A DNA stretch of 64,000 nucleotides from Macrostomum lignano (lineage: Eukaryota): NCBI GenBank assembly GCA_002269645.1, contig NIVC01002831.1:22350-86349 (forward strand). The letters are read 5' to 3'. Below are positions 1,624 to 52,432 of the stretch, piece after piece. Position 1 is the stretch's first letter. Every line of letters starts with the position of its first letter. Position numbers and translations under genes: made by a program. The notes under the pieces are model-generated. The model searched no databases and was not told where the DNA came from. It saw nothing but the letters and a program-made list of their open reading frames with translations.

Positions 1624-1723
1624 ATGGCTTGGCGGGATCTTCGCGGCTGGCTGCTCGTATTGTTGTGGGCCACCGCATCTGTTGAAGCTGCCGATGTGGC
1701 CTCGCCCGATGGCTTTGCATTTG
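1624..1723 (+). CDS. Exon 1: signal peptide [22 protein letters not shown] plus short linker
   Basis: ATG in ACCATGG context, basic n-region, hydrophobic core, VEA-A cleavage-like motif, and donor G|GTAAG in phase 1 matching the downstream exons. Confidence 0.75.
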
Positions 1724-4700: not shown

Positions 4701-7700
4701 TGTGCTTATAAATTTAGTCTAACTAGCAAAAAATTTAAATTTGGAAAAGACGATCGGTTTCGTCGAGGGTCAAAGAATGAGTACGAGCGTATGGCCGATA
4801 CAGGTGGCGATTTCCCATACTGAAACTGCTGTAAAACTTCGAGCTTGCACTGAAACAATCGTTTGAAAATCGTAGAGGACGGCAAGACGCTGCTGTTCAC
4901 TATTCGGAGCAACATCGGCGAGGACCCGCAGAAGGCGTTCGTCACCCGGGGCAACGGCAACCGGCCAGCCCCGTCGCCCAATGAGCCGCTGCCGGCCGTC
5001 TACCGGTCCGACCTGCTCGACGAGCTGCCCGACACTGTCCGCCGTCTAGACAAAACCTACATGGTCGCCGAGATGCGCGTCGACAGGGCCGTCGTGATGC
5101 GCGTCGTCTTCGATGTCGGCGACTACCCGGACAGCCTAGACCAGTTCAACTGGTTCTCGCCGTCCCGCCTGATCGGCGCCTGGCCCTACCGCCTTGACGA
5201 CGTGGCCAAGTTTAGCGCCTTCTCCATCGAGGGTGACGCAAACAAGGAGCGCAGGTTCTTCATAGCAACGAGCTTCGACGGCTGCAATGGTGACCGCGGC
5301 TTCTGGCTCGTGTCCGGCGCCAGAGATCCCTGTGGCTGGGGCCACAACGGCTGGAAGGGCCTCGCACCGGCGCTGATCTACAATAGATTTAAGGACCGCA
5401 CGCTGCAACAGGGTGCCGCGTATGCCGACCAGTTTCTGGTGTACCTCACCGACACTGTGGACGAGTTTCGAGCCGAGTTCAGGAAGACCTTCTTCCACGG
5501 TGAGCACTTTACTGAAACTATTAACATTATCGAATAACTAAGGCAATTATAGTTGAAAGTCGCCCTGATCTGCTACAGCGGAAAGAAAACAGCTTCTGTA
5601 CACGATCAAGGCCAACATCCACAAGAGCGCGCTGGAAACGTTCAGGCAGCAACAAAACTATCGCGCGCCAATCGACGATAATTTGCCGATTATGTACCGG
5701 TCCGACCTGCTGGACGATCTGTCGTGGACCGTAAAAGACTCGGGCATGACCCAGATGGTGATGGAGCTCGTCAAGGACCACTCAGTGGTGGCTCAGTTGG
5801 TTTTCAATGTGACTAAGGATGTCGACAGTCTGACCTTAGACAACTGGTTCTCGCTAGAACGGCTGGAGTCCTCCTATCCCTACCTGGTGGACAAGACCAA
5901 GTTCAACTACTTCTCTTTGGATGGAGACGTGGGCGAGCAGCGGCGGTTTTACATCAGCTACAACTATGGAGGCTGTCATGTTGACGCCGGGTTCATCGCT
6001 ATCTCAGATGCCAGAGACAGTTGCAACTGGGCCAACCGCAACTGGCGCGGCTCCCCGCCGTTGCTGCTGTACAACCGGCTGCAGAACAAGCCGTTCCATG
6101 CTGGCGTCGACACGGCCGACCGGATGCTTGTGTACCTCACGCACGAGGTCGAGGACAGACGATGGAAGTTCAGGCAACCGTTCATTGTTGGTGCGTGCGA
6201 ACATTTTTGCAAAAGCATTGTGCAAGTATATTACTTTGGGCACTTATACTTAGGGTAGTTGAACGAAGCAGTAAAATAAGATATATTTATTTTAATGCCC
6301 TAATAATAATCACGAGTCAGAATCAAAGACCGGTGTTACAGTTTAGAGCCTCTGGGGCTCCGGCCAGTTTGGGTCGCCGATCCGGAGACTGCGAACAGGC
6401 TGGGATCTCCAACCGGAGACTTTACAGGGTGTAAGATCTCCTTCTGACAATATCGCCCCCTGTATCCTGCAGGAGGCGCTAAAGCTGCAAAACTTTGCTG
6501 ATTCTTTCTCTAAATTGCTTGTTGACTGTTATACCACAGGTTACATTCCCACAATCTGGAGAATGTCCAGAGTCGTGTTCATCCCGAAACCTGCTAAGGG
6601 TGACTACACCAACGTGAAATCCTTCCGGCCCATCAGCCTCACTTCCTTTTGTGTTAAGCTGATGGAGAGGCTCATCCTGTGGAGGCTTCGAGAGTGCGAC
6701 CTGCGCTCCGACCCTGTCAGTAAGTACCAGTACGCCTTCCAGCCTGGGAGGACGACTGAGCATGCTCTCCACGCCATTACCTCCAAAATTGAGAGTGCCA
6801 TCCTTAGCAAACAACTCGCTTGCGGGTTGTTCGTTGACTTCGAAGGAGCATTTGACAATGTCCTCTTCCGCTCCTTCAGAAATTCTCTTTCCCGCAGGAA
6901 TGTAAGACACAGCATTGTTCGCTGGATTTATTTTATGATCCGCAAAAGGTTTGTGACATCCACACTTATGGGCGTTACCCTCACCCGGGCGGTGATGAAA
7001 GGCGGCCCGCAAGGTGGCGTGCTAACTCCACTTCTCTGGAATCTCGTCATGGACGAACTTCTAACCGCTGACATTCCCAGCAGTATCACCAGGGCGGGCT
7101 ACGCCGATGACGTTGCCGCGGTCGTCAGCGGACCCGACCCCGCCACTCTGCGCAACCTGATGCAGCAATTCGCCGACAAGGCGGCCGACTGGGCTACACA
7201 GCATGGCCTAAAAATCAGCGTCACTAAGACTGTCGCTGTCGTTTTCACCAAGCGCCGTAAGGGGGAGATGAAAAACCTCACTGTCTATGGCAGAAACATC
7301 CCCTTCAAGAAGGAGGTCAAATACCTCGGTGTGACGCTAACGCATGACCTGCGCTGGACGAAGCACCTTGATAACGTCATCGGTCGGGCAAAACGCTGCT
7401 TTGCCCAGCTGCGCAGAGCCATCGGGCCGACTTGGGGCCTCTCGCCTAGAACGGTCCGTTGGATTTATACCGGCATCATCCGGCCCAGTATCACATACGC
7501 GAGTCTCATCTGGACTAGCGTGCTGGAGCAGAAGGCCGCCCGTCAGCGGCTGTACCAGCTTCAGGGCAGCATTTGCCGTGCCATCACAGGTGCGTACCCG
7601 TCCACCCCTTACGAGGGGCTGAACACTATCCTTAACCTACCTCCGCTTCACCTATTTATTAGGGCGGAGGCTATGAAGTCTGCCTCCCGGCTTATCAGAG

Positions 7701-10700
7701 ATAAAACGTTAAATAACGCGCCCTCTGGCTTTATGCCAATGAAAACATTAATCCCGCATATGGACTTTGTCCGCCGCGACCTTAACAACATCCACATGGA
7801 CCTGGGCAATGTGGATAGTCGACCTCCCGCCCTCAACATCAGGAGGGGCTTCAAGACCGCCATCCCTGGCCGAGACAACATTCCGCTGGATGTCGGTGTG
7901 AACCGGCGCAGCCAGGGCATTCACTGCTTCACCGACGGCTCGCTGTTCAACGGCCGCGCTGGAGCGGGTATTGCCATTTTCCACGAGGGTAAGATGCTTC
8001 TCCAGGAAAGTCTGCACCTCGGTGAGAACACCTCAGTTTTCCAAGCTGAAATTTGCGCCATTGAGCAGTGTGCCCAGCAACTGTTTCAGGCGAACATTAA
8101 TAATTTTGACATTAATTTCTACACTGATAGCCAAGCTGCTATTAAGGCCTTAACCACTGAGAATATCTCCGCTGCTACAGTATCTCAATGCCACCGCAGT
8201 GTGCAATCTCTCTCAGTCCTTAACAGGATTAGAATTATCTGGACACCTGGTCACAGCAACATCCTGGGCAACGAGCTCGCGGACTCTCTCGCCAAGGAGG
8301 GCAGCAACCCAGACGGCAACCACCGTCTGATGAGGCTACCCACCCCCAGGTCGCAAGTCACCCGCCATATCAACAGGTGGCTCCATCAGCAGCACCAGCT
8401 CCACTGGAACAGCTGCACCGAGTACAGGCAGAGCCGCTCTGCCATGCCTAACCTGAACAGGAAAGTCTCTGATTATCTGATTTCGCTTAACAGAACCGAC
8501 CTCAGGGAGATGTGCATGGTCCTAACCGGCCACGGATTCTTCCAGAGACATATATCGTTGCAAACCGGTTGCCCTCCCACCTGTCCCTTCTGTGGCATAG
8601 GAGAGGAGACCGCGGAGCATCACGTCACCTTCTGCCCTTACTTCAACAAGGCGCGGCACAAATACCTCGGCCACCCCCAGCGGATGGACGAGCTGACCAC
8701 CGCGGACAATATCCGAGACCTCCGCGCCTTCGTCCGGGACTCCGGCCGGATGAGGGTCGCCGATGCCTCCACTGCGGACCTGCCGACTACTGGCGGGGAC
8801 TGGGCGCACCCCCAAGGCTAATCCTTGTGCTCTTTTACCTTGGGGTTGCGATAGGGGCCTCGCGGCCTATTCGCGGCGCCTGCGCCCCCCGTCAGTAGTA
8901 AGTAAGTAAGTAAGATCTCCTTCGGAGACTACAAACGGTTATGGATCTCCGCGATAGGAGATGCGTAACCGTTGTGGGATCTCCAAGGCATGGTCAGGTC
9001 TCCCTATCCGGAGATCTTAAACCAGATTCCGTTGTCCCCTCGGAGATTCTGCACCGTTTGCCGATTTCCTTCACGAGTGCAAAAACTAGGGTTTGATTTA
9101 GGATCTCCAGTTACCGATCTCCCCCATAATTAATATGTCGAAAATTATAATCTCTAGCTTTTTATTGTGTATAGAAACCTTCCGTGAGGGCGATTGTAAA
9201 ATGGCGTAATTTTTCGTGTTGGGTCTCCGTGCAGGAGATCCTTAACTTCAGGGAACAGAAATCCTAACACCGGTTCACTTTGCCGCAAAAAGTTCCAAAG
9301 GTTAGATATCATTCAAATACTGAAGTAAGTTTAAAAAAGGATCTGAACCAGCTGTACATTGATTTAAGCCATCTTTGACGTGCAGAGCTATTAGTGGTAA
9401 TGTGAACCGGCCTTTAAGAAGCTAGAGGTTCATGTATTGAGAAAACGAACGCCAGAGTTATACAGCATCTTTGATTGTGTTAGCAACTTTTTGGCAAGAA
9501 ACATTTAATCTATTTCTATTGGCTTTCAGACGGAGACAAGCAAATCCTGTACACAATCACGCCCAACGTTGGGAAAGAAGCGGTGGACACATTCAAGCAT
9601 CAGCAGGACTACCCGATTCCATCCGATCGCTCCCTGCCCCCAATTTACCGGTCGGACCTGCTGGACCAGATGGATAAAACCGTGAGGCGTTCAGGTCGTA
9701 GCAAGATGGTTGCAGAGATGCGCAAAAACAACGCAGTAGTAGCGAGACTTGTATTTGACGTTGCAACTGACACGGATTCGCTTACCTTACTCAATTGGTT
9801 CTCAAGAGATAGACTCGTCGCAGCGTACCCTTATCAGATTTCCAAGAAAATTCATCTGAACTACTTTAGCGTGGATGGTGACACATCCTTAAAGCGAGGA
9901 TTCTCTGTAACGGACACGGGAAAGGGATGTGACAACGATTTAGGATTCTGGATTGTCACAGACAGGAAGGATCCTTGCAACTGGGGATCACAGGGCTGGA
10001 AGGGAGCCGCGCCAGTGCTGCTATACAACAGATTCCGAACGGCGCCATTTCGCACCGGGGTGGACTATGCGGACCGCTTCGTGGTCTACTTGACAAACCA
10101 CGTGGACGAACTGCGCCCAGAGTTCACAAAAGCGGTCCTGTTTGGTGAGACATTTTATTTGATCGAAAGAATTTATGGAAAAATTCTATTGGATGCTTAA
10201 CAATAGGAAATTCAATAACAAAAACTCAAGTAAAAAATTTTAGAAAAAGGCAAGCAGCTGCTTTACACCATTGTTCCGAACGTGCACTTGGAGGCTCTGA
10301 CAACATTCGAGCATCAACAAAACTACAAAATGCCTGCCGATGGGTCTCTGCCTCCGGTCTACAGATCCGATCTCATCGACGAGCTTCCTCGAGCTGTGAG
10401 GCAGTCGGGAATGACCAAGATGGTCGTCGAGATGCGCAAAGACAATAAAGTCGTCTCTCAAGTGGCATTCGATGTTTCCACCGACACAGAGAAGCTCGAC
10501 AAAGAGAACTGGTTCTCGCTGTTAAGACTGTACTCATCTTACCCTTATCCAATTAGTCGGAAAGAGTTCAACTACTTTTCTTTGGATGGGGATACTGGCC
10601 AGAAGCGAAGATTCTACATCAGCAACCACTATGGAGGTTGCGACCGAGATTCAGGCTTCATCATGGTGTCTGACTCGCGCGGCAACTGCGACTGGGTAAC

Positions 10701-13700
10701 TCGAGGCTGGCGAGGCTCTCCTCCGAGTCTGGCCTACAACCGAGAGCAGGGTCGATCGTTCCACGACAGCGTTGGGTACGCGGACAGACTAGTAATTTAC
10801 CTGACAAAAGAGGTACTGGATCCTCGAGCCGAGTTTAAGAAGCCGCTAATCATCGGTAGGATATACTCGTACCTTTTGGTCAATTTTTGTTCCTTCTTTG
10901 TTCTTTGTCCTACGTTTCTACAAAAGTTTTTGCCTTTTAGGACTTGTATTGCTCCAAAATGAAATTCTCTTCAGCAACTGCAGTAAAATGTGCTGGAAAC
11001 TATATTTTTTGCAACATAGTCTAGACGATTCTAGCCTTCCAACTACGAGCGTACCCAATTTAACGAATTTTTCCAATCGAAAATTTATCTTGTGAGAGTT
11101 TTAAATTTCCAAAAAACAGCAAACTAAGTAGAAGGAATAAGTCTTCTGTTAGTACTAAAGAAAATTCAATCCAGTATTTATTTCTTCGGTTAAAATTTGT
11201 AAAAGATAATATTGCCATCAGAATTCTCTAAGGGCAACAATGCATCTCATTGACGATTCGGTTTCGATAGACACTTGTTGGGACTCGAACGCCCAAGCTC
11301 CGAAGAAAAAACGTACAATTCACGTACAATCAGGATTTCTCTATCTAAACATCTGAATATCTGAATCGTACGAGTGAAGAAGCTACGTACATCCAGTAAA
11401 CCTGAGCAAGAGAAGTGTAGTTATTTGAATTCACCCGGTCTCCACGCTCTAGGACTGTGAATTTTTATAACATTGTGCCAAGCAACTACGCTCGTATTAG
11501 TCATTTACTCATTTTCTCATTTTCTCATTTTCTCATTTTCTCATTTACTCATTTCTCATTCTCATTTCATTCATTCTCATTCATTTCATTCATTCTCATT
11601 CTCATTCTCATTCTCATTTTCTCATTTCTCATTCTCATTTTCTCATTTACTCATTTTACGAATTTCACTTATTACCGATGAAAACAACCGGAAAAGTTAC
11701 AGTGATCGACCTAAAACTTCAAAAAACATTTAGTTTACACAATGGGTAAACTCCTCCAGTTTCTATTGGAAACCGAAAACCATATATTTGCAGTACAGTA
11801 AGGATCATTAAAAAACTAAAGCTTTTCGTTCACCGGAAAAATACACTACGGAGATAGGAAATTTCACGATTTTCAACACTAAAACAGTGATTGTGTCTCT
11901 TAGAAGTGTCAGAGAAAGTTATAATCACACTATTTCGTGTTTCACATGCTGCTCTAACGACGCATTAATAGAATTTTTATGTTAAATTGGTCTGTGACTT
12001 GAAAAAACGTTTAAAATAATGACAAGAAATAATAACAATTTCCTATCTCCGTGGTGCATTTTTCCGGTAAAACCTGCCTTTAAAACTATTTCGGAACGAA
12101 AAGCTTTATGCATATCGATAGAGCAATAAGAAAGGCACAACATATCAAAAGATGAACACTGGATCTGCCTAGTATTAAAAGGAAAAACAATTTTGGTGCT
12201 GAAAAAATTGAAACCTCCCATCTCTATAGTGTATTTTTCGGGGAAAAGTTGCCTTCAAAACATTTACCATAGATTTCGAGTGTAGCGTCCTATATATATA
12301 TGTTACTTGAGTAGGCTTTGATATTGTCTTGAGCAAGAGATAAATCTACAGTAACCTTAAATCTATATCATCTCAGTACGGGCAAATAAATAATCTGCAT
12401 CGGGTTCCACATCCTGAAATTGCACCTCGGTAATAAAAGAGTATCTTTTGATTGCAGATGGCAGCAAGCAGGTGCTGTTCACGATCAAATCCAATATCAA
12501 CACCGAGGCCAAGCACGCATACTCCTTCCAGCAGAACTACAAGGCTCCGACTGACGGGTCTCTGCCTCCTGTCTACAGATCTGACCTGCTCGATCAACTC
12601 GCCCTCACTGTGAAGCAATCAGGAAAGAAAAAGATTGTCGCTGAGATGGAAAAAGATGATCACGTGGTTGCTCGAATGGTGTTTGACTTGTCAGAGAAGA
12701 CCGACGAGATCACACTGATGAACTGGTTCTCGCGCTCTCGACTCGTCTCGTCCTATCCGTTCAAGATCGATCCGAAGCAAAGCACGAACTACTTTAGTAT
12801 TGACGGAGACGCTGGTCAAAACAGACGCTTTTTTGTTTCGTTCTCTGGTGGTGGATGTGACAATGATCGAGGCTTCTGGATGGTGTCCGACAAACGCGAT
12901 CCGTGCACTTGGGGCAACGAAGGCTGGAAGGGCTCGGCTCCAGTGCTGGTGTACAACAGATACCGAACTGCCACCTTTAGAAGCGGAGTGGACTATGCTG
13001 ATCGATTCACGATCTACCTGACGGACTCGGTGACGGAACTGCGAGAGGAGTTCAATCGGAAGGTCATGTTTGGTAAGTGTGTTATTGAAAGCAAAGTTAT
13101 TTGTTTTTTTTGTTGATTGCTTGTTTTTGTTGTTCGATAAGGTTTTGAAGTTCGGCAATCTTGAGGGTAACATGGGCGTTTCCTTGGAGAAACAGAACTG
13201 ATTCCTTGCGCTTAATGGTGCGGCAGCAGGCGGGGCGGTCGGCGTGCTCCAGGGTCACCTCCGGGTGGCACGAGGTGATGCAATGTGGGCTGCTTAAGGC
13301 AGTCTGCTTTGCAATGGTTCTGTTAAGGTCAGGGCACACTTTGTGGCAATCGGCGGATGGCGGCGCGGAATTTGTGGGTTCAGCCCCTGCAACAGGCCGG
13401 GTTCAGATCCTGGGTCGCAGAAGTTTTAGTTCAGGGCGCACCAGCGCAACGGCTGGCTATCGAACTGACCGGGTCCGGTGTCGCCGGACATCGCTCAAAC
13501 AAATCCACCCCTTGTACCTGGTGATTCCTCTGCAGGCTGTCGTGCGATTGCAAAACGAGTTGCAGTTTTGATCGGCGTATTTGAGCGGGATGGTCCCGTT
13601 GTGAATTCTGGCGTCGCAGGAGAGGCACAGGGCCTGGACCGATTGCAAAGCGGAGGCGGGGGTGCTGAGTCTCGGGGTGTCGGTCATCAGGATCAAAATT

Positions 13701-16700
13701 GTGATCGGCGCTTTACGTTTGTATCTGATCCCGTTGATAGCGTCGGACTCCGCTGCATTCAATTTTCACATGTCACAATTCCGCTGCATTGTAACAAGTA
13801 CTTCGCAAAGTGTGCTTTGGCGCTGTAGGAATAGGAGATCTCTTCTGAGATCTCTTCTGAGCGGTTGCAGTCATTGTTGTTAAACGGGGGGAAAGAGCTA
13901 GCTTCCCGCGGATCAGCCCTGGGGGGGGGGGCTCTGCCGCTGAGTGGCACTTCCAGGGGCCTAAGCCCGAGATACCTTCCTGATTGGGCCCCGACGTCTA
14001 GGCCAGGGGGAATTTTGGGGCTACTAACCCAAACCTATGGTACAAGACACCGCCAACCCAAAACGTGGAATTTCGGTGCTAGGACCGAGTTTACCCAGGC
14101 TACCCCCCAGCAGACAAGTCCTCGGGAGTGCGCGAAAAACAGAAGCAGTTGCAGTCATTAGGGCTTGGATTGCAAGCAGAGGCAAAAGAAGAAGCGTCAA
14201 AACTTGGGGCGTCGGACGAGCTGGAGCTCAGGGAAATAATCATGTAGTGTGTGCGCACCAGGAGAGGTGGTTGCCTGGTAGCAGGCATCGTAGTACGGCA
14301 GGCCCCCGACCATCCGAGTCGCCTCGGAGAGGTGATGCCTATGACCACAGCTACATCGTTGTTAATACCGTGGCTGTCCATACCTGTTGATACGATGGGC
14401 CGCTGCTGCTGCTGCTGCTGCTGTGTGAGTGTCGTCGGGAACGATTTCCCCCCTGTCAGAGCTACTCTAGGCCACGGACTACTTAAGTATACGCTAAGGG
14501 AAATTCAGCCTCCAAAAACATTTACACGAATCCTGCGTGTCGCGTCCTTTATAAACGACAATTAAATTGTCCCGGCTCTGGGCGGGCTGACCGAAGGAAA
14601 CTTAACACTACGTCCTCATCACTCAAGCTGCTCTTGCTGCTGTCATTGTTGTTGTTATTGACCACCCACTGGGTCTCCTGGTTGTTTGACCTTCCAATGC
14701 TAACTGGCTGCTTTGTGTGAGTTGTATCGGATTTTACCGTATTTAACTAATTTTCTACTATATTCGTATGTATAAGTTTGTGAGACGTTACGAATAAAAT
14801 GATCCGTGCATTTAAAACCATTAAATACTCGAATAAGACTAATTAAGGTCGACAAAACTTATTCACCAGAAATAAGCACTGTAAAAAATATTCCAACCTG
14901 CATCACTTTCCAATTTAGAAAACGACAAACAGCTGTTGTTCACCATTGTTCCGAACGTGCACTTGGAGACTCTGGAGACATTCGAGCATCAACAAAACTA
15001 CAAAATACCTGCCGATGGATCTCTGCCTCCGGTCTACAGATCCGATCTCATCGACGAGCTTCCTCGAGCTGTGAGGCAGTCGGGAATGACCAAGATGGTC
15101 GTCGAGATGCGCAAAGACGACAATCAAGTCGTCTCCCAAGTGGTGTTCGATGTTTCCACCGACACAGAGAAGCTCGACAAAGAGAACTGGTTCTCGGAGC
15201 TTAGACTTGAGTCGTCTTATCCGTACTCGGTCGATCGGAAAGAGTTTAACTACTTTTCTCTGGAAGGCGAGAGAAGCTCAAAGCGACGCTTCTACATCAA
15301 CAACTGGCACCACGGATGCCACCGAGAGACGGGCTTCATTGTTGTGTCGGACGCGCGCGGTCACTGCGACTACGTGACTCGAGGCTGGAGGGGATCTGCT
15401 CCGACCTTGATTTACAGTCGACTACCTGGAAAGCCGTTCGAAGAGAGCGCAGGATACGCTGACAGGCTACTGATTTACCTTGCAAAGGAAGTTCCGGACC
15501 TCAGGGCCGAGTTCAAGAAGCCACTCATGATCGGTACGTTATGCTGTTAAGTTTATTGATTGGGATCACAGGATTTACGAGTACTGCGTTTTATCTGTTG
15601 GCTGATTTCTTCACAGATTGGTATATAAAAGCTTTAAAAATCTCAAAGAGTTTGCTGAAGAAACAAAATTACGATTACTTGTTGACTGTTGGAACTTTTT
15701 TATAGCTTTTTGCAGCCCCATTTGAGCTGACACGGATAAGATTTAATCCAAGGAGTTATATAGAACTCTATGACATATTCTGTCAGGCAGCCTTGCTACC
15801 ACAGACAAAAGCTGCATTATTTTGGACAACATACGAGCATATCTTGGATTACAGTGCCCAAGAATTGGCTGAAAAAAGCTAACATTTTATGAAAAAGTGC
15901 CATTATATTAATGTTTAAAAAAGTCAATTGAAAACCCTGGGTTAACCATGACTTTATTCATAGAGACAAGGCCATGTGTTCGCGGATCGATACCGACGAA
16001 AAGCTCAAGAAAAAAGAATGCAGGGAGTTGGTATACCTCGCTAGGGCTGAGCGTACACGGTCACTAACTGACAAAGAGAGATAGGTTGATGCAAAACTGT
16101 ACACGCTGAGTAAGTCCACTGGCTAGTTTAAAAGTCGCCAGCCTACAAGGACAAGACAGCTACCTATATATGCAATAGTACCTCGTAGAATGCCCTAGAA
16201 AAAATTAATTTTTTATTCAACTCTATTGACGCAGATGGCAGCAAGCAGGTGCTGTTCACGATCAAATCCAACATCAACACCGAGGCCAAGCACGCATACT
16301 CTGTCCAGCAGAACTACAAGGCTCCGATTCGTGGTTGCTCGAATGGTTTTTGACTTGTCAGAGAAGACCGACGAGATCACACTGATGAACTGGTTCTCGC
16401 GCTCTCGACTCGTCTCGTCCTATCCGTTCAAGATCGATCCGAAGCAAAGCACGAACTACTTTAGTATTGACGGAGACGCTGGTCAAAACAGACGCTTTTT
16501 CGTTTCGTTCTCTGGTGGTGGATGTGACAATGATCGAGGCTTCTGGATGGTGTCCGACAAACGTGATCCGTGCACTTGGGGCAACGAAGGCTGGAAGGGC
16601 TCGGCTCCAGTGCTGGTGTACAACAGATACCGAACTGCCACCTTTAGAAGCGGAGTGGACTATGCTGATCGATTCACGATCTACCTGACGGACTCGGTGA

Positions 16701-18121
16701 CGGAACTGCGAGAGGAGTTCAAACGGAAGGTCATGTTTGGTAGGTTTGAAGTCAGAGTCTTCATATTATTATCTCATCTGATTATCAAATGAAAGCTGTT
16801 TACCATTTTAAACATCTTAGAAAAGAGCAAGCAGCTGCTTTACACCATTATTCCGAACGTGCACTTGGAGGCTCTGACAACATTCGAGCATCAACAAAAC
16901 TACAAAATGCCTGCCGATGGGTCTCTGCCTCCGGTCTACAGATCCGATCTCATCGACGAGCTTCCTCGAGCTGTGAGGCAGTCGGGAATGACCAAGATGG
17001 TCGTCGAGATGCGCAAAGACAATAAAGTCGTCTCTCAAGTGGCATTCGATGTTTCCACCGACACAGAGAAGCTCGACAAAGAGAACTGGTTCTCGCTGTT
17101 AAGACTGTACTCATCTTACCCTTATCCAATTAGTCGGAAAGAGTTCAACTACTTTTCTTTAGAAGGGGATGCTAGCCGAAAATTCTACATCAGCAACCAC
17201 TATGGAGGTTGCACCAGAGATTCAGGCTTCATCATGGTGTCTGACTCGCGCGGCAGCTGCGACTGGGTAACTCGAGGCTGGCGAGGCTCTCCTCCGAGTC
17301 TGGCCTACAACCGAGAGCAGGGTCGATCGTTCCACGAAAGCGTGGGCTACGCGGACAGATTGATCATTTATCTGTCAAACGAGTTCCTTGACCCACGTGC
17401 CGAATACAAAAGATTTATTATTTTCGGTGAGTCGTATTTGCTTTACATTAAACGGGTTTGCCGGACCCTTTAAAGCTACTACTGACGTAGTTCATTATTA
17501 AAGCCAATGAAAGTATTATTTCATGTAGCACTCTTTAATTTCCCTCTATTTACAGAAGAATACAAGCAGCTTCTGTTCACAATCAAGGCAAATGTCGGCC
17601 GAGAGGCGCTTAACGTGTTTTCGCATAGGCAGGACTTCAAAATGCCGACAGACGGTTCGCTGCCACCAGTGTACCGCTCCGATCTCTTGGACCAGCTGGC
17701 CTTGACTGTGAAGCAGTCGGGCAAGTCAAGGATGGTTGTTGAGATGCGCGAAGGCAAGAGCGTCGTGTCGCAGGTGATTTTCAACGTTGCCAAGGATACG
17801 GACAAGTTGACTCGCGAAAACTGGTTCTCGAAGGGGCGGATCGAGTCGTCGTACCCATTTTGGATCGGCCGGACTGAATTCAGCCAGTTTTCGCTGAATG
17901 GCGACTCATCCAGAAAGCGGCATTTCTCAATCAGCAGTACGGGCGGGGGCTGTGACACCGAGCGCAGCTTCTTTGTCGTTTCGGACAAGGAAGACTCCTG
18001 TCCCTGGATTAGCGAGGGCTTCAAGGGATCTCTGCCAGTTCTGGTTTACAACTACATCCAGGATGCTCCTAGCAGAGTGGGCAGCGGCTACGCTGATCGG
18101 CTGGTAATCTACCTTATGTAG
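1624..18121 (+). CDS. Multi-exon gene for a secreted protein with nine tandem ~205-aa uncharacterised domains (1654 aa if the broken exon 8 is skipped)
   Basis: Exons 1624-1723, 4876-5499, 5579-6190, 9530-10144, 10244-10855, 12458-13072, 14919-15533, 16235-16739 (broken), 16821-17426, 17556-18121. All have GT/AG boundaries and every intron is phase 1. Without exon 8 the joined length is 4965 nt, i.e. 1655 codons including the stop. Shared motifs: [19 protein letters not shown], FSxxG, GC, CxW, YADR. Extra small exons between 1724 and 4875 cannot be excluded. Confidence 0.85.
1890..2395. repeat. 15-bp minisatellite (GTGTCTGGGTCAATC and variants) in intron 1
   Basis: Period-15 tandem repeat visible directly. 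Confidence 0.95.
3016..4374 (-). mobile_element. Full-length but decayed mariner (DD34D) transposon
   Basis: ~27-bp TIRs CGAGGGTTGTCAGAAAAGTTCTGTGTA (3016-3042 and 4348-4374, one mismatch) with TA on both sides. Transposase motifs RSGRP, WVPHLL, HDNA and YSPYLSPCD are present. The ORF is split by frameshifts and a TGA in DET*AHSWE. The CGAGGG terminus resembles Hsmar2/irritans-type TIRs. Confidence 0.95.
4876..5499 (+). CDS. Exon 2: repeat domain 1 (subtype A)
   Basis: TAG|AG GAC GGC AAG ... TTC CAC G|GTGAG; 624 nt, open. Confidence 0.9.
5579..6190 (+). CDS. Exon 3: repeat domain 2 (subtype B)
   Basis: CAG|CG GAA AGA AAA CAG CTT ... ATT GTT G|GTGCGT; 612 nt, open. Confidence 0.9.
6445..8909 (+). 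mobile_element. 5'-truncated non-LTR retrotransposon, RT + RNase H + CCHC (I-group; Loa/R1-like)
   Basis: Open frame ~6446-8821 with QGGVLTP, YADD, RNase H (TDGS...AE...TDS...WTPGH...GNELAD) and C-terminal CPFC...H...C. It has a (TAAG)n tail and a 14-bp TSD GTAAGATCTCCTTC at 6431-6444 and 8910-8923. The endonuclease domain is absent. Confidence 0.95.
9530..10144 (+). CDS. Exon 4: repeat domain 3 (subtype A)
   Basis: TTTCAG|AC GGA GAC AAG CAA ... CTG TTT G|GTGAG; 615 nt, open. Confidence 0.9.
10244..10855 (+). CDS. Exon 5: repeat domain 4 (subtype B)
   Basis: TTTTAG|AA AAA GGC AAG CAG ... ATC ATC G|GTAGG; 612 nt, open. Confidence 0.9.
11505..11656. repeat. Degenerate (TTCTCA/TTTTCTCA)n simple repeat
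   Basis: Low-complexity tract visible directly. Confidence 0.9.
12458..13072 (+). CDS. Exon 6: repeat domain 5 (subtype A)
   Basis: TTGCAG|AT GGC AGC AAG CAG ... ATG TTT G|GTAAG; 615 nt, open. Confidence 0.9.
13140..14700 (-). mobile_element. GC-rich intronic insertion, possibly a decayed zinc-finger-bearing 5' part of a retroelement
   Basis: Composition contrasts with the AT-rich introns. Minus-strand fragments are Cys/His-rich ([26 protein letters not shown]). No RT motif, TIR or TSD was found. Confidence 0.3.
14919..15533 (+). CDS. Exon 7: repeat domain 6 (subtype B)
   Basis: TTTAG|AA AAC GAC AAA CAG ... ATG ATC G|GTACGT; 615 nt, open. Confidence 0.9.
16235..16739 (+). pseudogene. Exon 8: repeat domain 7 (subtype A), near-identical to exon 6 but with a net 110-nt frameshifting deletion
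   Basis: The segment equivalent to 12551-12662 (112 nt) is replaced by TT at 16328-16329. Length is 505 nt, and read from the canonical acceptor there is a TGA at 16351-16353. Splice sites are intact. Confidence 0.85.
16821..17426 (+). CDS. Exon 9: repeat domain 8 (subtype B)
   Basis: CTTAG|AA AAG AGC AAG CAG ... ATT TTC G|GTGAG; 606 nt, open. Confidence 0.9.
17556..18121 (+). CDS. Exon 10: terminal repeat domain 9 (A-like), ending in the stop codon
   Basis: TTACAG|AA GAA TAC AAG CAG ... TAC CTT ATG TAG. No transmembrane segment or GPI-type tail is visible. Confidence 0.9.
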
Positions 18122-20041: not shown

Positions 20042-21787
20042 CTATTTTAAAGACATACAAGTAACATAGCCTGACATTAAATTTGCGCTCTTTTGCGTGG
20101 TAAACAAATTTTGCCTCTTGATAGACCAGCAGTTAGTTTGTATTTTTGACGCCAATGCTTTTATGTCGAAAAAGCTTCTGGTATGCTCAACAGCCTTCCC
20201 CAAGTCTTCGTAGCCAACGAATTCACCCTTTGCTCTACTCCAACATAACTCCTTTCGCAGCTTTATCGCATCAATCACGATTACCTAATTTTTGTTCCAT
20301 ATTGATTGATTACATAGCTCCTTTATCTTTGAAACTGCCGTAGAGGACACACCAGGATCCCCGTCAACAGCGAGCTTCCATCTTCTGATGGTAGACACAG
20401 CCGGTAACTTTATAACTCGTCTGATTACAGAATACGCCTTTGGAGAACAGAAGTGCACCTGTGCGGAAAAGATGCCAATGTCCGCCAAAAATCTGCCACT
20501 CTTCCCTCTGCTCGAGTTTAGCATCATTCTTCGTCCTTCTTTCGTTAAAAAACATCTTCAGGTTTTTGCTCATATTTTCTGATTCATTTTCCAGCCGCTT
20601 AACTCTTTTCACGGTTGCATTTAGAATTTTGGTTAGCCGCTTTGAGCGCATCTTATAGTGCTGCAAATTCCTTCTAAATGCGTCAGGTACCCTTCTTTTC
20701 TTACTTTGTCTCCATTTTTTTATTTTAGGCCGCAAATTCTTCTTTGTTGAATTTGGATTTTGCATGAAAGCTGGTGAGTGCGGTGTAACTTGAGATGGGA
20801 TTGAAGCTGGCGATGGTTGCGGTGACACTTGGGGTGGGATTGAAGCTGGCGATGGTCGCGGTGACACTTGGGGTGGGATTGAAGCTGGCGATGGTTGCGG
20901 TGACACTTGGGGTGGGATTGAAGCTGGCGATGGTCGCGGTGACACTTGGGGTGGGATTGAAGCTGGCGATGGTCGCGGTGACACTTGGGGTGGGATTGAA
21001 GCTGGCGATGGTTGCGGTGACACTTGGGGTGGGATTGAAGCTGGCGATGGTTGCGGTGACACTTGGGGTGGGATTGAAGCTGGCGATGGTCGCGGTGACA
21101 CTTGGGGTGGGATTGAAGCTGGCGATGGTTGCGGTGACACTTGGGGTGGGATTGAAGCTGGCGATGGTTGCGGTGACACTTGGGGTGGGATTGACGCTGG
21201 CGATGGTTGCGGTGACACTTGGGGTGGGATTGAAGCTGGCGATGGTTGCGGTGACACTTGGGGTGGGATTGAAGCTGGCGATGGTTGCGGTGACACTTGG
21301 GGTGGGATTGACGCTGGCGATGGTTGCGGTGACACTTGGGGTGGGATTGAAGCTGGCGATGGTTGCGGTGACACTTGGGGTGGGATTGAAGCTGGCGATG
21401 GTTGCGGTGACACTTGGGGTGGGATTGACGCTGGCGATGGTTGCGGTGACACTTGGGGTGGGATTGAAGCTGGCGATGGTTGCAGTGACACTTGGGGCAG
21501 GATTGAAGCTGGAAGCTGCAGCGTAGCTGGGTATTGCATTGGTATTGCGCCAGGGTTAAGTTTTTTTTCCATTGGCGAAAGACCCTTGAGATAACAGCGA
21601 GTATGAGTCTGGAGAAAAATGTTTGTCCATTCATCCATGAGCTACTTATATGAACTCCTTGTCTGGGGCGTATAAACGGGTCCACTTTTAACCATAGACT
21701 GTGGACTGTGGGCAAGTGAGGAATATATAATATAGTTTTTGCGTTATAATTAAGAAAAGCCGTGTTCAGATTTCCAATTCTTTTCAC
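20042..21787 (-). mobile_element. Decayed THAP-domain / P-element-like (THAP9-type) transposase
   Basis: In order along the minus strand: THAP C-terminal AVP-like box (KLNPGAIP), basic coiled coil, HFCSPKAYSVIRRVIKLPAVSTIRRW, and MIDAIKLRKELCWS...FVGYEDLG. These resemble THAP9/P transposase blocks and are split across frames. Element ends were not found. Confidence 0.7.
20790..21512. repeat. 39-bp minisatellite, ~18 copies, in frame within the THAP transposase linker (PPQVSPQPSPASI)n
   Basis: Period-39 tandem repeat with few variant sites. Confidence 0.95.
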
Positions 21788-28592: not shown

Positions 28593-31500
28593 CTACACAA
28601 TGACCCATTCCTCTTCGACGCTTTCTTCTGGTTCTTGTTCTCTTTCGTCAGCCTCTTCGTCTTGCCACAACCCTTCTTGTCTACGCGGCTCAATGTAGCG
28701 TTTCATCTTCTCTACATTTACAATCTTTACTTTCTGATGTTCATCAATCGACTTCACTTCATAGGTCAGGCTGGTCAACTTCCGGGTGACACGGAAAGGT
28801 CCAGTCCATGGAGCGTGGTGTTTGACAGACCAGCGAGGTTCACGCTGCCGTAGGACAGATGGTGGGATAAAAATCCAGACCAATGATCCAACCTTGAACC
28901 CTTTTTTCTTGGACTTTCTATCATAATATCTCTTCTGGCGGCGCTGTGCTAAATCAACAGACTCTCTCACAGCTTCAAATGCTTTCAGTAGAGACTCTTT
29001 CGTGGAGCTGGCGAAAGTTACAGCAGTGCTGGCCGGCTCAGCCAGTCGATATACAATATCAAGAGGAAGCGTAACTTCTCGCCCAGTCATCAGGAAATGA
29101 GGCGTAAAGCCGGTGCTGCTGTGGACGGTGCTTCGATAGGCCAGAAGGCAATGAGGAATAACATCTTGCCAGTCTTCGGGTTCCACCGTTTGCAGGTAGC
29201 ATCGTAGCACGCTGTGCAATGTTCTATGGAATCTTTCTACAAGACCGTCACACTGAGGATGAAAATAGGTAGTGCGAGTTTTTTGAATGTCAAATATTTT
29301 GCAGAGACTCTTGATGACTTTGCCGTCCACGTTGCTACCCCGATCGGAGTGAATGATATGCGGTGCTCCCCATCTCGATATCCACACGTCGAATATTGCC
29401 TTCGCAACGGTGTTCGCTCGTTCGTCAGGAATTGGTATTAATTCGGCCCACTTAGTGAAGTAGTCGACTATCGTAAGCAATCGATTATTGCCTTGCCTCG
29501 AGGTAGCCACTTTTACTATGTCGATTCCAATGCGATGCATAGGAAATCCTGTAGCTATCGGCTGCAGAGGGCCTCGAGTGATTGATGTTGGCCTAGATCT
29601 TTGACACGGAATGCATGACCTGACAAATAGTTCAACATCCAGGGCTAATTTTGGCCAGTAGGCACGCTTCTTGACAGATGTTCTTGTCTTTTCGACACTA
29701 AAGTGACCTAACTCATGAATTTCTTTAATGAAGCTTTCTCGTTTACACTGCGGCAGTACTAGAACAGGCTTAGTCTTGAATAAATAATGCATTACACCGT
29801 TAATGAAGCACAATTCGTCGGCTTTGGACATAAGGCTCAAACTTTCTGGTGACATTCTATCTCGTTCTCCAGTTTCAAACGCTGTTTTTCCATTGGCTAG
29901 CTTCCGAAATACTGGTCCAATTCCTGGATCCTGTAACTGCAGTGCACGCATACTCGGCTCCTCTTCAGTCTCACTCTGCTCAGCTTCGTCTATTAACTCA
30001 CTTTCGTCCTCGCTTTCGGATTTCCTTGGAACCAGCGTTTGTTTCCTTCTAGACAAAACAGCTGCGACAGTCTGATCTTCGTCAGTTTGACATTCTGCAT
30101 CTGAAATTGCTTTGCTAGGTCGACAAGATTCGCACGGTCTTGTACACCTGCGTGATAAAGCGTCTGCGTTGGAATGCAGTTTACCTGGCCGGTAGAGTAT
30201 CTCGAAGTTAAACTCCTGAAGAGATTCGATCCATCGAGCTAATTGGCCATTAGGTTCTTTGAACTGTAGTAAGTAGGTCAACGCCTGGTGATCTACCCTG
30301 ATTGTAAACTTCTTTGGCGCTAGATATGACCTAAACTTTTTAACAAACTCGACTACTGCTAGTAGTTCTCGGCGAGTCACGCAGTAATTCTTTTCGGCGG
30401 TGCTGAGCACTCGACTTCCATAGGCAATCACTTTTTCTTCGCCATTCTGTTGCTGTGATAAAACGCATCCTATGGCAAAGTCGCTAGCATCAGTATCTAG
30501 AACAAATTCGGAGTCTTCGCCTGTCATTATTGGCAATGCTAAGATAGGTGCCGATGTTAAGGCGGACTTAAGGCGAATGAAACTTTGCTCTGCCTCGTCG
30601 GTCCAGGTAAATTTCTTATCAGTTGTCAGCACTCTTAAGGGCTCGGAAATCTTTGAATAGTCTTTAATGAATCGTCTGTAATATGATGACAGGCCTAGAA
30701 AACTTCTAACATCTTTCTGATTCGTTGGTGTTGGCCATCTCTTAATAGAATCAATCTTCTCATCGTCTACTGCTATTCCTTGAGGCGTTATCACATGACC
30801 TAAGATCTTAAGCGACTTGGCAGCAAAATTGCACTTACTAGGTTTAAGGCGAAGATTTGCTGCTCTTAATCGTTCAAAAACTTGTTTGAGTCTCTCGTTG
30901 TGAATATCTAACGTTTTACCCATAACAATAACATCATCGATGTAAGCTAAGCATGCTTCCCAATTTAAGCCTTGAAGGACCATCTGAATGAGTCTTTGAA
31001 AAGTTGATGGTGCATTGCGTAAGCCAAAGGGCATAACATTAAATTCAAAGAGTCCATGGTGACAGACAAATGCGGTTTTCTCGCGATCTTTTTCTTCCAT
31101 TTCTACTTGCCAGTAGCCTGCTTGCAAGTCTAATGCAGAAAAGTAAACGTTATTTGCTAAAGCATCTAGCATGTCGTCGATTCTTGGCACAGGGAATGCA
31201 TCAGGTTTAGTTGCAGCATTCAGTTTTCTGAAATCAATGCAAAAACGAGAGCTTCCGTCCTTCTTTTTCACCAGAATGACAGGTGCAGCCCACGGTGATG
31301 TTGACGGCTGAATGACTTTATCATCAAGCATTTGTTGAATCAACTTCTGCTCCTTGATGGTTGGCAGTGCTGCTCTCCTTAATGTCTCTCTGACAGGCAT
31401 TGCTGTGCCAGTATTTATCGAGTGTTTCAGTAAAGCAGTTCGACCAAGCTTGCCATCTCTTGAAAATATGTCGCTGTACTCATCTAGGATGTCACTAACA

Positions 31501-32432
31501 GATTTCCTTTCAGCTTCTGTGAGATCTGGAGAAATTTTGAATGTTTTCTCTGCATCTTCAGTCTCTTCTTTGCTACCAGACTCGGATTTATCTGCTACTT
31601 CTTCGACGACAATGCAGGTCTCTCCTCTGCAATCTAGAGGGGTGAAGGAACCAACTAACGAACCTTTCTTGATGGTCAGGTCTCTGTTCGAGTTCGAGTT
31701 GATAATATTGATGTACATGCCTTCATTCTTTATTAAATCAACAGTTCTAGCAGCCAAGAGTCCTGGGATTCTTTTGTTCGACTGGACTAGTCCTGGTGCC
31801 ATTGACTGAGTTGACATCTTTGGTGCAATGGAAATAGTTGCTGCTTGTCCTGGTTTTAGCTGGACAGTTTCAGTTGCGATGATCTTGCAGCTTCTCTGAA
31901 CTTCTGTTGTTTTTCTAGTTGGGAAACTTCTGTTCTGATTATTAAATGTGATCATGCCTTCTGCTGGATGGATAGATACATTGAAATTAGTAAAGAAATC
32001 ACATCCTAGGATGACTGAATGCTGAATGTCTTTGCAGATGATGACTTCTTGCTGACAGACAATATCTCCAAAATTAAATTTGATTGTCATTTCTCCTAAT
32101 ACAGAAAGCTGTTTACCATTTGCAGCTTGTAATTTGACATTAGAAGCTCTTACTAGGTACTTTGACTTGTTAATTAAACTTGAATTTATGATTGTAGCTG
32201 AAGCACCGGTATCTATTAGACATGGAATATTTTTGCCAAAGAATTTAGTAGAAACGTACATAACATTAGTTGACATACAGTTTACATTTACAGTTACTGG
32301 TTCTGGCACTTGGTCTTTCTCCTCAGAATTTGGGCCACTCAATGATGAGGCTGGGGTCTGGCCCCTGATCCAGCCTGTGTCAAGTTTGGGCACACTCTTT
32401 GAACATGTCCAGGTTGACCACATCTGAAGCAA
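28593..32432 (-). CDS. Gypsy pol polyprotein (protease, RT, RNase H, integrase)
   Basis: LIDTGAS protease; YIDD RT; DTDAS...RELLA RNase H; H-H-C-C zinc finger, D-D35-E core and GPF motif of integrase. No stops over 1279 codons. The ORF-track start is a TTG, so expression is probably by frameshift from gag. Confidence 0.97.
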   Translation of the reverse strand: MLQMWSTWTCSKSVPKLDTGWIRGQTPASSLSGPNSEEKDQVPEPVTVNVNCMSTNVMYVSTKFFGKNIPCLIDTGASATIINSSLINKSKYLVRASNVKLQAANGKQLSVLGEMTIKFNFGDIVCQQEVIICKDIQHSVILGCDFFTNFNVSIHPAEGMITFNNQNRSFPTRKTTEVQRSCKIIATETVQLKPGQAATISIAPKMSTQSMAPGLVQSNKRIPGLLAARTVDLIKNEGMYINIINSNSNRDLTIKKGSLVGSFTPLDCRGETCIVVEEVADKSESGSKEETEDAEKTFKISPDLTEAERKSVSDILDEYSDIFSRDGKLGRTALLKHSINTGTAMPVRETLRRAALPTIKEQKLIQQMLDDKVIQPSTSPWAAPVILVKKKDGSSRFCIDFRKLNAATKPDAFPVPRIDDMLDALANNVYFSALDLQAGYWQVEMEEKDREKTAFVCHHGLFEFNVMPFGLRNAPSTFQRLIQMVLQGLNWEACLAYIDDVIVMGKTLDIHNERLKQVFERLRAANLRLKPSKCNFAAKSLKILGHVITPQGIAVDDEKIDSIKRWPTPTNQKDVRSFLGLSSYYRRFIKDYSKISEPLRVLTTDKKFTWTDEAEQSFIRLKSALTSAPILALPIMTGEDSEFVLDTDASDFAIGCVLSQQQNGEEKVIAYGSRVLSTAEKNYCVTRRELLAVVEFVKKFRSYLAPKKFTIRVDHQALTYLLQFKEPNGQLARWIESLQEFNFEILYRPGKLHSNADALSRRCTRPCESCRPSKAISDAECQTDEDQTVAAVLSRRKQTLVPRKSESEDESELIDEAEQSETEEEPSMRALQLQDPGIGPVFRKLANGKTAFETGERDRMSPESLSLMSKADELCFINGVMHYLFKTKPVLVLPQCKRESFIKEIHELGHFSVEKTRTSVKKRAYWPKLALDVELFVRSCIPCQRSRPTSITRGPLQPIATGFPMHRIGIDIVKVATSRQGNNRLLTIVDYFTKWAELIPIPDERANTVAKAIFDVWISRWGAPHIIHSDRGSNVDGKVIKSLCKIFDIQKTRTTYFHPQCDGLVERFHRTLHSVLRCYLQTVEPEDWQDVIPHCLLAYRSTVHSSTGFTPHFLMTGREVTLPLDIVYRLAEPASTAVTFASSTKESLLKAFEAVRESVDLAQRRQKRYYDRKSKKKGFKVGSLVWIFIPPSVLRQREPRWSVKHHAPWTGPFRVTRKLTSLTYEVKSIDEHQKVKIVNVEKMKRYIEPRRQEGLWQDEEADEREQEPEESVEEEWVIV

Positions 32433-33571
32433 GTGATCTGTTGATACCTTGTTGCTTGCTGATTAGGATATTTCTGTTGTAGCTTAAAGTTGTTACTTGA
32501 CGGCTGATTTGACTTTGGTTGGTTCTGCATAAATTTCTGCTGCTGGTAATACTTTGGTTCTGGCTGGTTACCTTTTGGTGGTAATGATTGCTTATTTTGA
32601 TGGCTTTCAGGCTGTACTAAGGAGACTTGCTGACTACTCACTGGTGCTTTTGCCAAGAGTTGCTGTGTCTCACGGACTTGTTGTGCAATCTGCAAGGCCT
32701 GTTCTGCTGTATCCAAGTTGGTGAGATTTGATAGATGCTCCATGACCTTGAGGTCATTGATGCCAGTTATGAACTGATCTAAGATCATGGTTTGCACAAC
32801 TTCAGTAGCAATTGCATCTGGGTAGGCCTGGATAGCCAGGTTTTGTAAAGCAGTAAGAAATTGCTCAAATGTCTCTGTTGGTTTCCTAGATAGATTTCTA
32901 AGTTCACGGCGTAGAACAACATTGCTTTTCTCACCATGGCGGCCTCGGAGAAATTCTGTGCATTCCAAGAAAGTGACATTTGGAATATTTTCTAATGGAG
33001 TGTTGACAGGCACACCATGCGTTACATAAATAGTTGAGAGCCACGAGCGATAAGTACAAAATGCTGATCCTAAGAATGCTGATAAAGTTTGAATTTTAAT
33101 TGCTTCAGTTAAATTTGAAAACCTACTGATGTAGCTTTCAATCCGGCATAGGAAATCCGCAAAATTTTCTTTTCCATTAAATGGCATTGGCTTTGGAATT
33201 GGCGGCAATTGAATTTGCATAGCTTGGTACTTAGATTCAATAGGTTGCAAAAGATGACTAGCAACTGGTAAAGAGTTAATTGGATATTGATTAGGCCTTG
33301 AATAGTCTACCGGATTTGTAACAGAAATTGAATCACATTCTTGGTTTGTTTGAGTTACTATTTTAGGAGCTTCAACCTTGGATTTAATTGGCTGAGCACT
33401 GTTATTAGCACTTTTAGATGGACACAAGTGTTCAGTAGCAACTGATGATAATGGCACTTGCTGACTATTTGCCTTGTTTTTAGTAGTAGACCTTGTCTTT
33501 GGTTTGCTAGTATTTGAAGCACTTTTTGTCTTTGTTAATTTGCCTGTAGGCACTACTTTCTTTGGTGGCAT
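32339..33571 (-). CDS. Gypsy gag
   Basis: 410 aa with a capsid-like region (PFNGKENFADFL...LTALQNLAIQAYP...LDQFITG) and a CX2CX4HX4C knuckle (CFRCGQPGHVQRVC). Confidence 0.95.
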   Translation of the reverse strand: MPPKKVVPTGKLTKTKSASNTSKPKTRSTTKNKANSQQVPLSSVATEHLCPSKSANNSAQPIKSKVEAPKIVTQTNQECDSISVTNPVDYSRPNQYPINSLPVASHLLQPIESKYQAMQIQLPPIPKPMPFNGKENFADFLCRIESYISRFSNLTEAIKIQTLSAFLGSAFCTYRSWLSTIYVTHGVPVNTPLENIPNVTFLECTEFLRGRHGEKSNVVLRRELRNLSRKPTETFEQFLTALQNLAIQAYPDAIATEVVQTMILDQFITGINDLKVMEHLSNLTNLDTAEQALQIAQQVRETQQLLAKAPVSSQQVSLVQPESHQNKQSLPPKGNQPEPKYYQQQKFMQNQPKSNQPSSNNFKLQQKYPNQQATRYQQITCFRCGQPGHVQRVCPNLTQAGSGARPQPHH

Positions 33572-38905: not shown

Positions 38906-38907
38906 AA

Positions 38908-39965: not shown

Positions 39966-40140
39966 CTTGCTGTCCTGGGATATTTTTTTGCATTGCACTT
40001 CATTTGAGCAGTTTTTCTATTGTCTATGTGAAGGCTTTATTTGGCCGTCTTTTTGATACTTGTAGAGTGCCAGAGATTCTATCTAGATGCCCCCCATCGG
40101 GGGGCGAAGATTGCTAGTAAGTAACTAAAAAAAAAAAAAA

Positions 40141-52163: not shown

Positions 52164-52432
52164 GTGAGAATTTTTCCATTGATTATAATGATAGCTACAT
52201 TTGCTGTAATGCTTAGTTTAGATATACACTTCCACTACTATTATTAGTATATTATTTAACTATTTTTGATAGATTATTAATTTTCGTAGACTTTTTAGTT
52301 GACTGGCGCAACAAGTTTTTGTCTAGTAATTTCGAGATAAAATAATTGAACTATTTAGCATTCGAACGTTAAAACCTTTTCTTGTTGTTTGCATTTACCT
52401 GAGTGACGTTTAAAATGAGTAGCAATATGCTT

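Follow-up and report, generated by a model that had tools for sequence, protein, structure and literature searches.

Probable recent gene conversion between non-adjacent exons of an old domain array in Macrostomum lignano

Introduction

Ectopic gene conversion has kept mammalian gene pairs alike for more than 100 million years (PMC2720389), and conversion in duplicated genes has been reviewed (PMC3924837). In fungal ribosomal-protein paralogues, homogenisation is restricted to exons and was attributed to donors made of complementary DNA (cDNA) (PMC6993855). For the GOT1 paralogues of Tigriopus, islands of divergence and novel combinations under conversion are reported (PMC3728101). Here we describe a gene of Macrostomum lignano in which such exchange probably takes place between exons of one and the same gene. 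The gene lies near the start of a stretch of 64,000 nucleotides (assembly GCA_002269645.1, contig NIVC01002831.1, positions 22,350 to 86,349 of the forward strand), referred to below as the window; all positions are those of the window. An earlier note on this DNA had proposed that repeated conversion between non-adjacent exons, possibly from a spliced cDNA template, shuffles the halves of a repeated domain.

Results

An old array of nine domain exons

The gene is on the + strand and consists of a signal-peptide exon followed by nine tandem copies of a domain of about 205 amino acids (aa), each on an exon of its own (Table 1). The predicted product is a secreted protein, given the signal peptide in exon 1. 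All introns are in phase 1; the domain exons are of the 1-1 type, with donors ending in G/GT and acceptors in AG/. Exons 4 to 9 alternate between two types, B-A-B-A-B-A, and the region studied here is the 3' two-thirds of the gene.

Synonymous divergence was estimated by the method of Nei and Gojobori on a codon alignment of the exons, either as the proportion of synonymous differences (pS) or as substitutions per synonymous site (dS). Leaving aside the three special exon pairs described below, pS was between 0.66 and 0.81 for 32 of the 33 pairs, B1-B2 included, and 0.58 for U1-U2. Even the B-type exon 4 shares with exons 6 and 8 only 51-78% of its nucleotides (pS 0.75). By this measure the array is ancient, and it is this saturation that leaves its introns unalignable. 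Among the old pairs, divergence is lowest between exons 2 and 3 (dS 1.1), and the GC content of these two exons at third codon positions (GC3; 0.85 and 0.77) is well above that of exons 4-10 (0.60-0.71). Exon 4 is nearer to exon 6 in its last third (pS 0.62) than in the first two-thirds (0.82; maximum chi-square P 0.024), a possible vestige of an exchange that took place far earlier.

Three exon pairs escape the saturation

On this saturated background we found three classes of low divergence, with dS of 0.015, 0.047 and 0.09. The intermediate value belongs to exons 6 and 8, taken over the whole exon. As had been claimed, these exons differ by about seven substitutions over roughly 500 shared nt: we counted seven outside the junction of a single deletion. 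The similarity, 97% over a block of 97 nt and 98.6% over one of 419 nt, is uniform and reaches both exon edges, with no internal breakpoint.

Exons 5 and 9 are closer still, with a dS of 0.015 over codons 12-118, and their resemblance is a mosaic. After three mismatches in the first 30 nt there follows a perfect run of 310 nt (10274-10583 = 16851-17160); one synonymous difference was scored for this run in 67 synonymous sites. The shared tract thus does not start at the splice site but about 30 nt downstream of it, within the exon. The run is closed by a patch of 21-27 nt at 17161-17181 in which exon 9 differs from exon 5 by five substitutions and a deletion of 6 nt. Four scattered differences separate this patch from the tail of exon 9 (17338-17426), where 28 of 89 nt are mismatched and pS over the last 28 codons rises to 0.87; this 3' break falls directly after a block coding for YADR. 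These positions fit the earlier description of an exon 9 almost identical to exon 5 except for a short patch near 17160-17185 and the 3' end. Neither the patch nor the tail has a donor among the other eight exons. In the last interval of the alignment A1 was no closer to A3 than to A2 (73/73/65%), a stretch whose shortness keeps a tree of it from being robust; in the body of the domain A1 equals A3 and A2 is distant.

Exon 7 is a chimera. It keeps to the sequence of exon 5 as far as GAGAACTGGTTCTCG, whose last nucleotide is 15196, and beyond that point nucleotide identity is about 70%, in agreement with the break previously placed at about 15195. Correspondingly, dS between exons 5 and 7 is 0.09 over codons 24-97 and 1.35 in the remainder. 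The break comes immediately after a block coding for NWFS, whose 12-nt core AACTGGTTCTCG is common to seven of the nine exons. The notion that domain halves are being shuffled describes exon 7 alone; it does not extend to exon 9, whose tail is stable in both assemblies compared below and does not look freely shuffled.

We assessed these mosaics with our own permutation versions of a Sawyer-type longest-run test and a maximum chi-square test (of the GENECONV and MaxChi type), a recombination analysis of the kind that had been recommended. In both tests, exon pairs 5/9, 5/7 and 7/9 (A1-A3, A1-A2 and A2-A3) gave P<1/2000. Control pairs were mostly non-significant, with two marginal values: P=0.048 for A1-B2 in the run test and P=0.024 for B1-B2 in the maximum chi-square test. 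Since the contrast is seen at synonymous sites of the same alignment columns, constraint at the protein level is ruled out as its cause.

The homogenised exons are flanked by unrelated introns

The similarity does not continue into the introns, as the earlier note had observed when it argued against a recent segmental duplication. Shuffled sequence gave the same Smith-Waterman scores as the real introns in all 13 comparisons of corresponding introns (z from -1.2 to +0.9), and about 7 nt beyond each exon ungapped identity had already fallen to chance. We looked specifically for homology between these introns, which a segmental duplication would have left, and found none. Setting dS against intron divergence, as also recommended, thus opposes values of 0.015-0.09 in the converted parts to introns at the level of shuffled sequence. 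Short introns of 99 nt and 81 nt adjoining converted exons are retained. A BLAST match between 9925-10832 and 16520-17403 might be taken for intron homology; we rejected it, as it consists of two exon matches that span short introns of similar length. The intron inside this bridging match (exons 4-5 against exons 8-9) is itself unalignable, with a Smith-Waterman score of 7 against 8.0+-1.5.

The intron between exons 6 and 7 is unusual in another respect. It is GC-rich (0.51, the other introns having 0.24-0.38) and at 13143-13478 resembles the read-through sequence that follows a B domain in a protein model of the second assembly, P0151 (41% aa identity over 134 residues). This similarity is too weak to make the case for positional orthology; the intron may hold an old inserted repeat common to both assemblies.

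Exon 8 is homogenised and disrupted

Of the sequence of exon 6, 112 nt (12551-12662) are missing from exon 8, where TT stands in their place at 16328-16329, a net loss of 110 nt. The deletion, which the earlier text on these exons did not mention, shifts the reading frame and leads to a stop 10 codons downstream; there is no in-phase acceptor. We considered that the gap might be a cryptic intron already spliced out, and rejected this since the missing 112 nt are not bounded by GT..AG. The junction is messy, with GAT microhomology. Exon 8 is probably a pseudo-exon or a skipped exon; otherwise this copy of the gene would be defective.

Paralogous exons cluster by genome

An independent assembly of M. 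lignano (ML2) is represented in UniRef by protein models P0001, P0151 and P0152, and we compared it with the window at the protein level. The models are automatic, come from a fragmented assembly and contain local, frameshift-like errors. Their exons and exon junctions are those of the gene in the window; they end at the same ...VIYLM as exon 10 and carry an intact B domain at the position of exon 8. Amino acid identity between the genomes is 97-98% for exon 10, 96% for exon 7, 94-95% for exon 9 and about 93-99% for exons 2-4. The B-type domains are only 85-88% alike between genomes, whereas within each genome they are nearly uniform: exons 6 and 8 of the window are 99% alike, and the ML2 copies mostly 99% (95-100%). 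The A-type domains also carry marks of their genome. Exons 5 and 9 of the window share Y7 and T19, which are absent elsewhere, and the A1-like and A3 copies of ML2 share Q14, K16 and K22. At the protein level the comparison thus reveals genome-specific states shared by paralogous exons. Because paralogous exons cluster by genome, the locus is, as far as protein sequences tell, under concerted evolution.

The 3' boundary of the exchange between exons 5 and 9 recurs in ML2, where no difference separates the A1-like from the A3 copies as far as YADRLIIYL and only the tails are distinct. This speaks against an artefact of the window's assembly and favours an island of divergence that is stable; the tail of exon 9 accordingly looks like a persistent one. 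The protein variant encoded by the patch of exon 9 is found in ML2 as well, in every A1-like and every A3 copy of the models. These models also contain more B-A units than the window, some of the copies being 100% identical, and hybrid domains with a body of the exon 9 type and a tail of the exon 5 type. We interpret the hybrids and the additional units as the likely product of unequal crossing-over between homogenised A exons, and the number of domains seems, from the models, to differ between haplotypes or homoeologues. No exact match to the open reading frames (ORFs) of the window that cover exon 10 and exon 8 was found in public assemblies.

A confidently predicted fold with no described family

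An exhaustive profile search found 589 relatives of the domain, the closest being UniRef gene models of M. lignano itself; a word-indexed search of proteins, started from the domain of exon 6, gave no match. The relatives sit in proteins with TSP1, TIG, FN3/Ig, kringle and ADAMTS modules, a company that indicates an extracellular domain. There was no match in Pfam, the Fibrinogen_C family (PF00147) included, and sequence and profile searches of the PDB were empty. AlphaFold2, run on an alignment of 30 sequences, gave a model with a predicted local distance difference test (pLDDT) score of 92.5; an earlier model from a shallow alignment had given no domain identity. A Foldseek search of the PDB with the model of pLDDT 92.5 returned nothing significant, the best template modelling (TM) score being 0.35 at an E value of 0.13.

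We considered whether this might be a fibrinogen-related domain (FReD). Like a FReD it is extracellular, measures about 200 aa and has one conserved, disulfide-like pair of cysteines; most of the weak matches returned by Foldseek are FReD chains, and UniProt labels one paralogue 'Fibrinogen C-terminal domain-containing'. Unlike a FReD, in P0022 the domain stands beside a true Fibrinogen_C domain and does not overlap it. The assignment was rejected in view of the missing PF00147 match, the empty PDB searches and the best TM score of only 0.35. The domain is a candidate for an undescribed family, weakly fibrinogen-like. Three short metagenome sequences listed as members of its cluster proved unrelated to the window.

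Surroundings of the gene

The remaining features of the window are listed with the exons in Table 1. Several of the minisatellites consist of units that are 97-99% identical (39 nt x19, 83 nt x24 and 57 nt x21), and the one at 1947-2392 lies within intron 1 of the domain gene.

Table 1. Exons of the domain gene, tracts within them and other features of the window
Feature	Positions	Strand	Description	Located by
Exon 1	1624-1723	+	Start codon and signal peptide; ends G/GT (phase 1)	tblastn with N-terminus of ML2 model P0002
Exon 2 (U1)	4876-5499	+	Domain copy 1; outside recent exchange; dS to all others saturated or >1
Exon 3 (U2)	5579-6190	+	Domain copy 2; outside recent exchange
Exon 4 (B1)	9530-10144	+	Domain copy 3
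Exon 5 (A1)	10244-10855	+	Partner of exons 9 and 7
Exon 6 (B2)	12458-13072	+	Intact partner of exon 8
Exon 7 (A2), 5' part	14919-15196	+	Homogenised with exons 5/9; ends with NWFS-coding block GAGAACTGGTTCTCG
Exon 7 (A2), 3' part	15197-15533	+	Not homogenised
Exon 8 (B3)	16235-16739	+	Near-copy of exon 6 with frameshifting deletion
Exon 9 (A3)	16821-17426	+	Near-copy of exon 5 with patch and divergent tail
Exon 9, identical run	16851-17160	+	310 nt equal to exon 5, 10274-10583
Exon 9, patch	17161-17181	+	Variable loop of domain (loop at codons ~117-139)
Exon 9, tail	17338-17426	+	Unconverted island; starts directly after YADR-coding block
Exon 10 (T)	17556-18121	+	Last, truncated domain; stop TAG; outside recent exchange
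Non-LTR retrotransposon ORF	6515-8821	+	Intact, 768 aa; RVT_1 and RNase_H; in 3.3-kb intron 3, in gene orientation
Ty3/gypsy-type long terminal repeat (LTR) retrotransposon	28593-33571	-	gag 32339-33571 open; pol 28593-32432 open (protease, reverse transcriptase, RNase H, integrase)
Six minisatellite arrays	843-1238, 1947-2392, 20779-21512, 37363-39971, 44678-46670, 52428-53643		Periods 15-83 nt
Shal-type Kv channel, first exon	42403-43512	+	Shal-type N-terminus, BTB_2, Ion_trans
Lipase-like protein	59190-60392	+	Lip_C
RRM protein, nucleolin-like	61463-63095	+	Acidic repeats of 111-135 nt ahead of RRM

Discussion

Exchange within the array appears to be recent and to have occurred more than once, between exon pairs 1.9-6.6 kb apart. 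The pattern of identity, the dS contrast, the breakpoints, the lack of homology between introns and the grouping of protein sequences by genome are observations; the repair mechanism, the direction of each transfer and the role of selection are what we infer from them. We consider it likely that genomic exons have repeatedly undergone ectopic (non-allelic) gene conversion, with homology setting the limits of the tracts. A break in one exon would be repaired by copying a paralogous exon on the same, the sister or the homologous chromosome. Tracts would start and end only where the copies are alike, that is at the exon edges (6/8) or at conserved internal blocks, namely the 12-nt core AACTGGTTCTCG of the NWFS block in the case of exons 5 and 7 and the YADR block in that of exons 5 and 9. 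If a genomic paralogue is the donor in homology-dependent repair, boundaries are expected at the limits of usable homology. The tail of exon 9 and its loop patch would be leftover islands of divergence, either because the tract ends there or because selection keeps the two copies distinct; in the case of the tail, a possible reason for selection is that a different domain comes next. Once homogenised, the exons may serve as substrates for unequal crossing-over, which would vary the number of B-A units and yield hybrids with the body of A3 and the tail of A1.

Several points weigh against conversion between genomic exons. We have a single genomic sequence, and the other assembly was compared through its proteins, taken from automatic models that contain errors. 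The identity of the exons is known from assembled sequence alone, in which over-polishing or collapse is possible. Exons 6 and 8 have no internal breakpoint, so that conversion is deduced there from the contrast with the introns and from the comparison between genomes. Conversion at a prior identity of 60-70% would be inefficient, and a long-running homogenisation of these pairs has to be assumed. Finally, the converted segments are not enriched in GC3, the GC-biased signature that is sometimes used as support for conversion.

Among other explanations, one that we consider unlikely is RNA-templated conversion, in which an enzyme such as that of the non-LTR element of intron 3 reverse-transcribes a spliced messenger RNA of the gene and the cDNA acts as donor. 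A dS far below intron divergence was the criterion used for the fungal ribosomal-protein paralogues (PMC6993855), and it is seen here. This criterion is non-specific in the present case, however: introns are unalignable for all exon pairs, and a genomic donor would give the same picture. An intact reverse-transcriptase ORF is indeed present within the same gene, but all that follows from it is a possible source of the enzyme. The similarity of exons 6 and 8 stops only a few nt short of the two splice sites, as expected of a cDNA donor. The tract between exons 5 and 9, however, starts some 30 nt into the exon, and both this tract and that between exons 5 and 7 end inside exons. Moreover, the introns of 99 nt and 81 nt beside converted exons were kept, and no tract was co-converted from one exon into the next. 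The donor is exon 6 for exon 8 and exon 5 for the neighbouring exon 9, and in the messenger RNA these donors do not follow each other in that order. The deletion in exon 8, finally, lacks the GT..AG borders of an intron. Thus, from the original proposal, the repeated, non-reciprocal exchange between non-adjacent exons and the resulting chimeric domains stand, on the strength of the dS classes, the significant breakpoints and the genome-specific states of the proteins, while the retained introns, the donors of exons 8 and 9 and the internal start of the 5/9 tract speak against the spliced cDNA. A bolder idea is that resident retroelements reverse-transcribe spliced transcripts of the gene in the germline, and that repair from these donors overwrites single domain exons and leaves the introns untouched. 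Together with unequal crossing-over this would turn the locus into a natural means of domain shuffling, by which haplotypes come to differ in a secreted binding protein. We regard the idea as improbable.

We likewise regard as improbable that the pattern is an artefact of assembly or polishing, in which reads of one exon corrected another and the 110-nt deletion is a further error. M. lignano is a recent polyploid and hard to assemble (10.1101/2023.04.19.537444), and the ML2 models do contain local errors of a frameshift-like kind. Yet these models, which are independent, repeat the pattern, including the YADRLIIYL boundary and the near-identical B copies. Mis-mapping of reads also requires high prior similarity, and the unconverted parts of the exons are only about 70% identical. 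Sharp boundaries at the edges of motifs, together with graded classes of dS, fit biology better than error.

We give equally little credence to a recent duplication of single exons, or of a B-A unit, by unequal crossing-over, followed by fast turnover of the introns through indels and transposons. Unit duplication does occur at the locus, to judge from the extra, 100% identical B-A copies of ML2; the B-A-B-A-B-A alternation is in keeping with it, and the long introns probably hold inserted repeats. At a dS of 0.015-0.05, however, copied introns should still be 95-99% identical, and none are, neither right next to the splice sites nor in the introns of 81, 99 and 129 nt. No single duplicated block fits an exon 8 that is like exon 6 beside an exon 9 that is like exon 5, and the internal mosaics of exons 7 and 9 are beyond what duplication alone can produce.

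Purifying selection on the nucleotide sequence (splicing enhancers, RNA structure or codon usage), with no exchange at all, might be read from the NWFS and YADR blocks, which most copies keep at the nucleotide level, but it is very improbable given a perfect run of 310 nt where other copies have pS of 0.7-0.8 in the same columns, and given genome-specific states shared by paralogous exons, which require exchange.

This gene is a compact, well-resolved example of an old array of domain exons that is still evolving, with tracts confined by homology, breakpoints at motifs and islands that resist. A freshly homogenised exon, exon 8, is already disabled by a frameshift, and the number of domains seems to differ between the assemblies. 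The locus also carries a methodological point: when introns are saturated, homogenisation confined to exons does not by itself point to a cDNA donor. The locus is a warning, too, to those who annotate the genome of the neopolyploid M. lignano, since exon 8 will break gene models and the paralogous exons attract mis-mapped reads. The domain of about 205 aa, with a confidently predicted fold and no solved counterpart, is a small lead.

How, then, does the locus compare with described systems? It shares with ectopic conversion in duplicated genes a similarity that exceeds the age of the copies, significant mosaics, clustering of paralogues by genome and islands of divergence. Unlike in the mammalian pairs, the partners are not separate genes but exons of a single gene only 1.9-6.6 kb apart. 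Converted fragments in mammals span introns, and intron similarity was a criterion for their selection; here, in a saturated array, no intron is included. The resemblance to the fungal ribosomal-protein genes lies in a dS well below intron divergence, the coding sequence being homogenised and the introns and flanks diverged. Those genes, however, are dispersed, very highly expressed, affected as wholes and often intron-poor, whereas here single internal exons are affected and the introns are kept. Neighbouring exons moreover have different donors, unlike in the fungal case, and a cDNA reading finds no specific support at this locus. The GOT1 paralogues of Tigriopus are reported to offer the same chimeric copies and the same short segments resisting homogenisation, in a pair of genes where we find an intragenic array of exons. 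What we describe is thus a known process, gene conversion in an old repeat array, in a new instance, an uncharacterised gene family.

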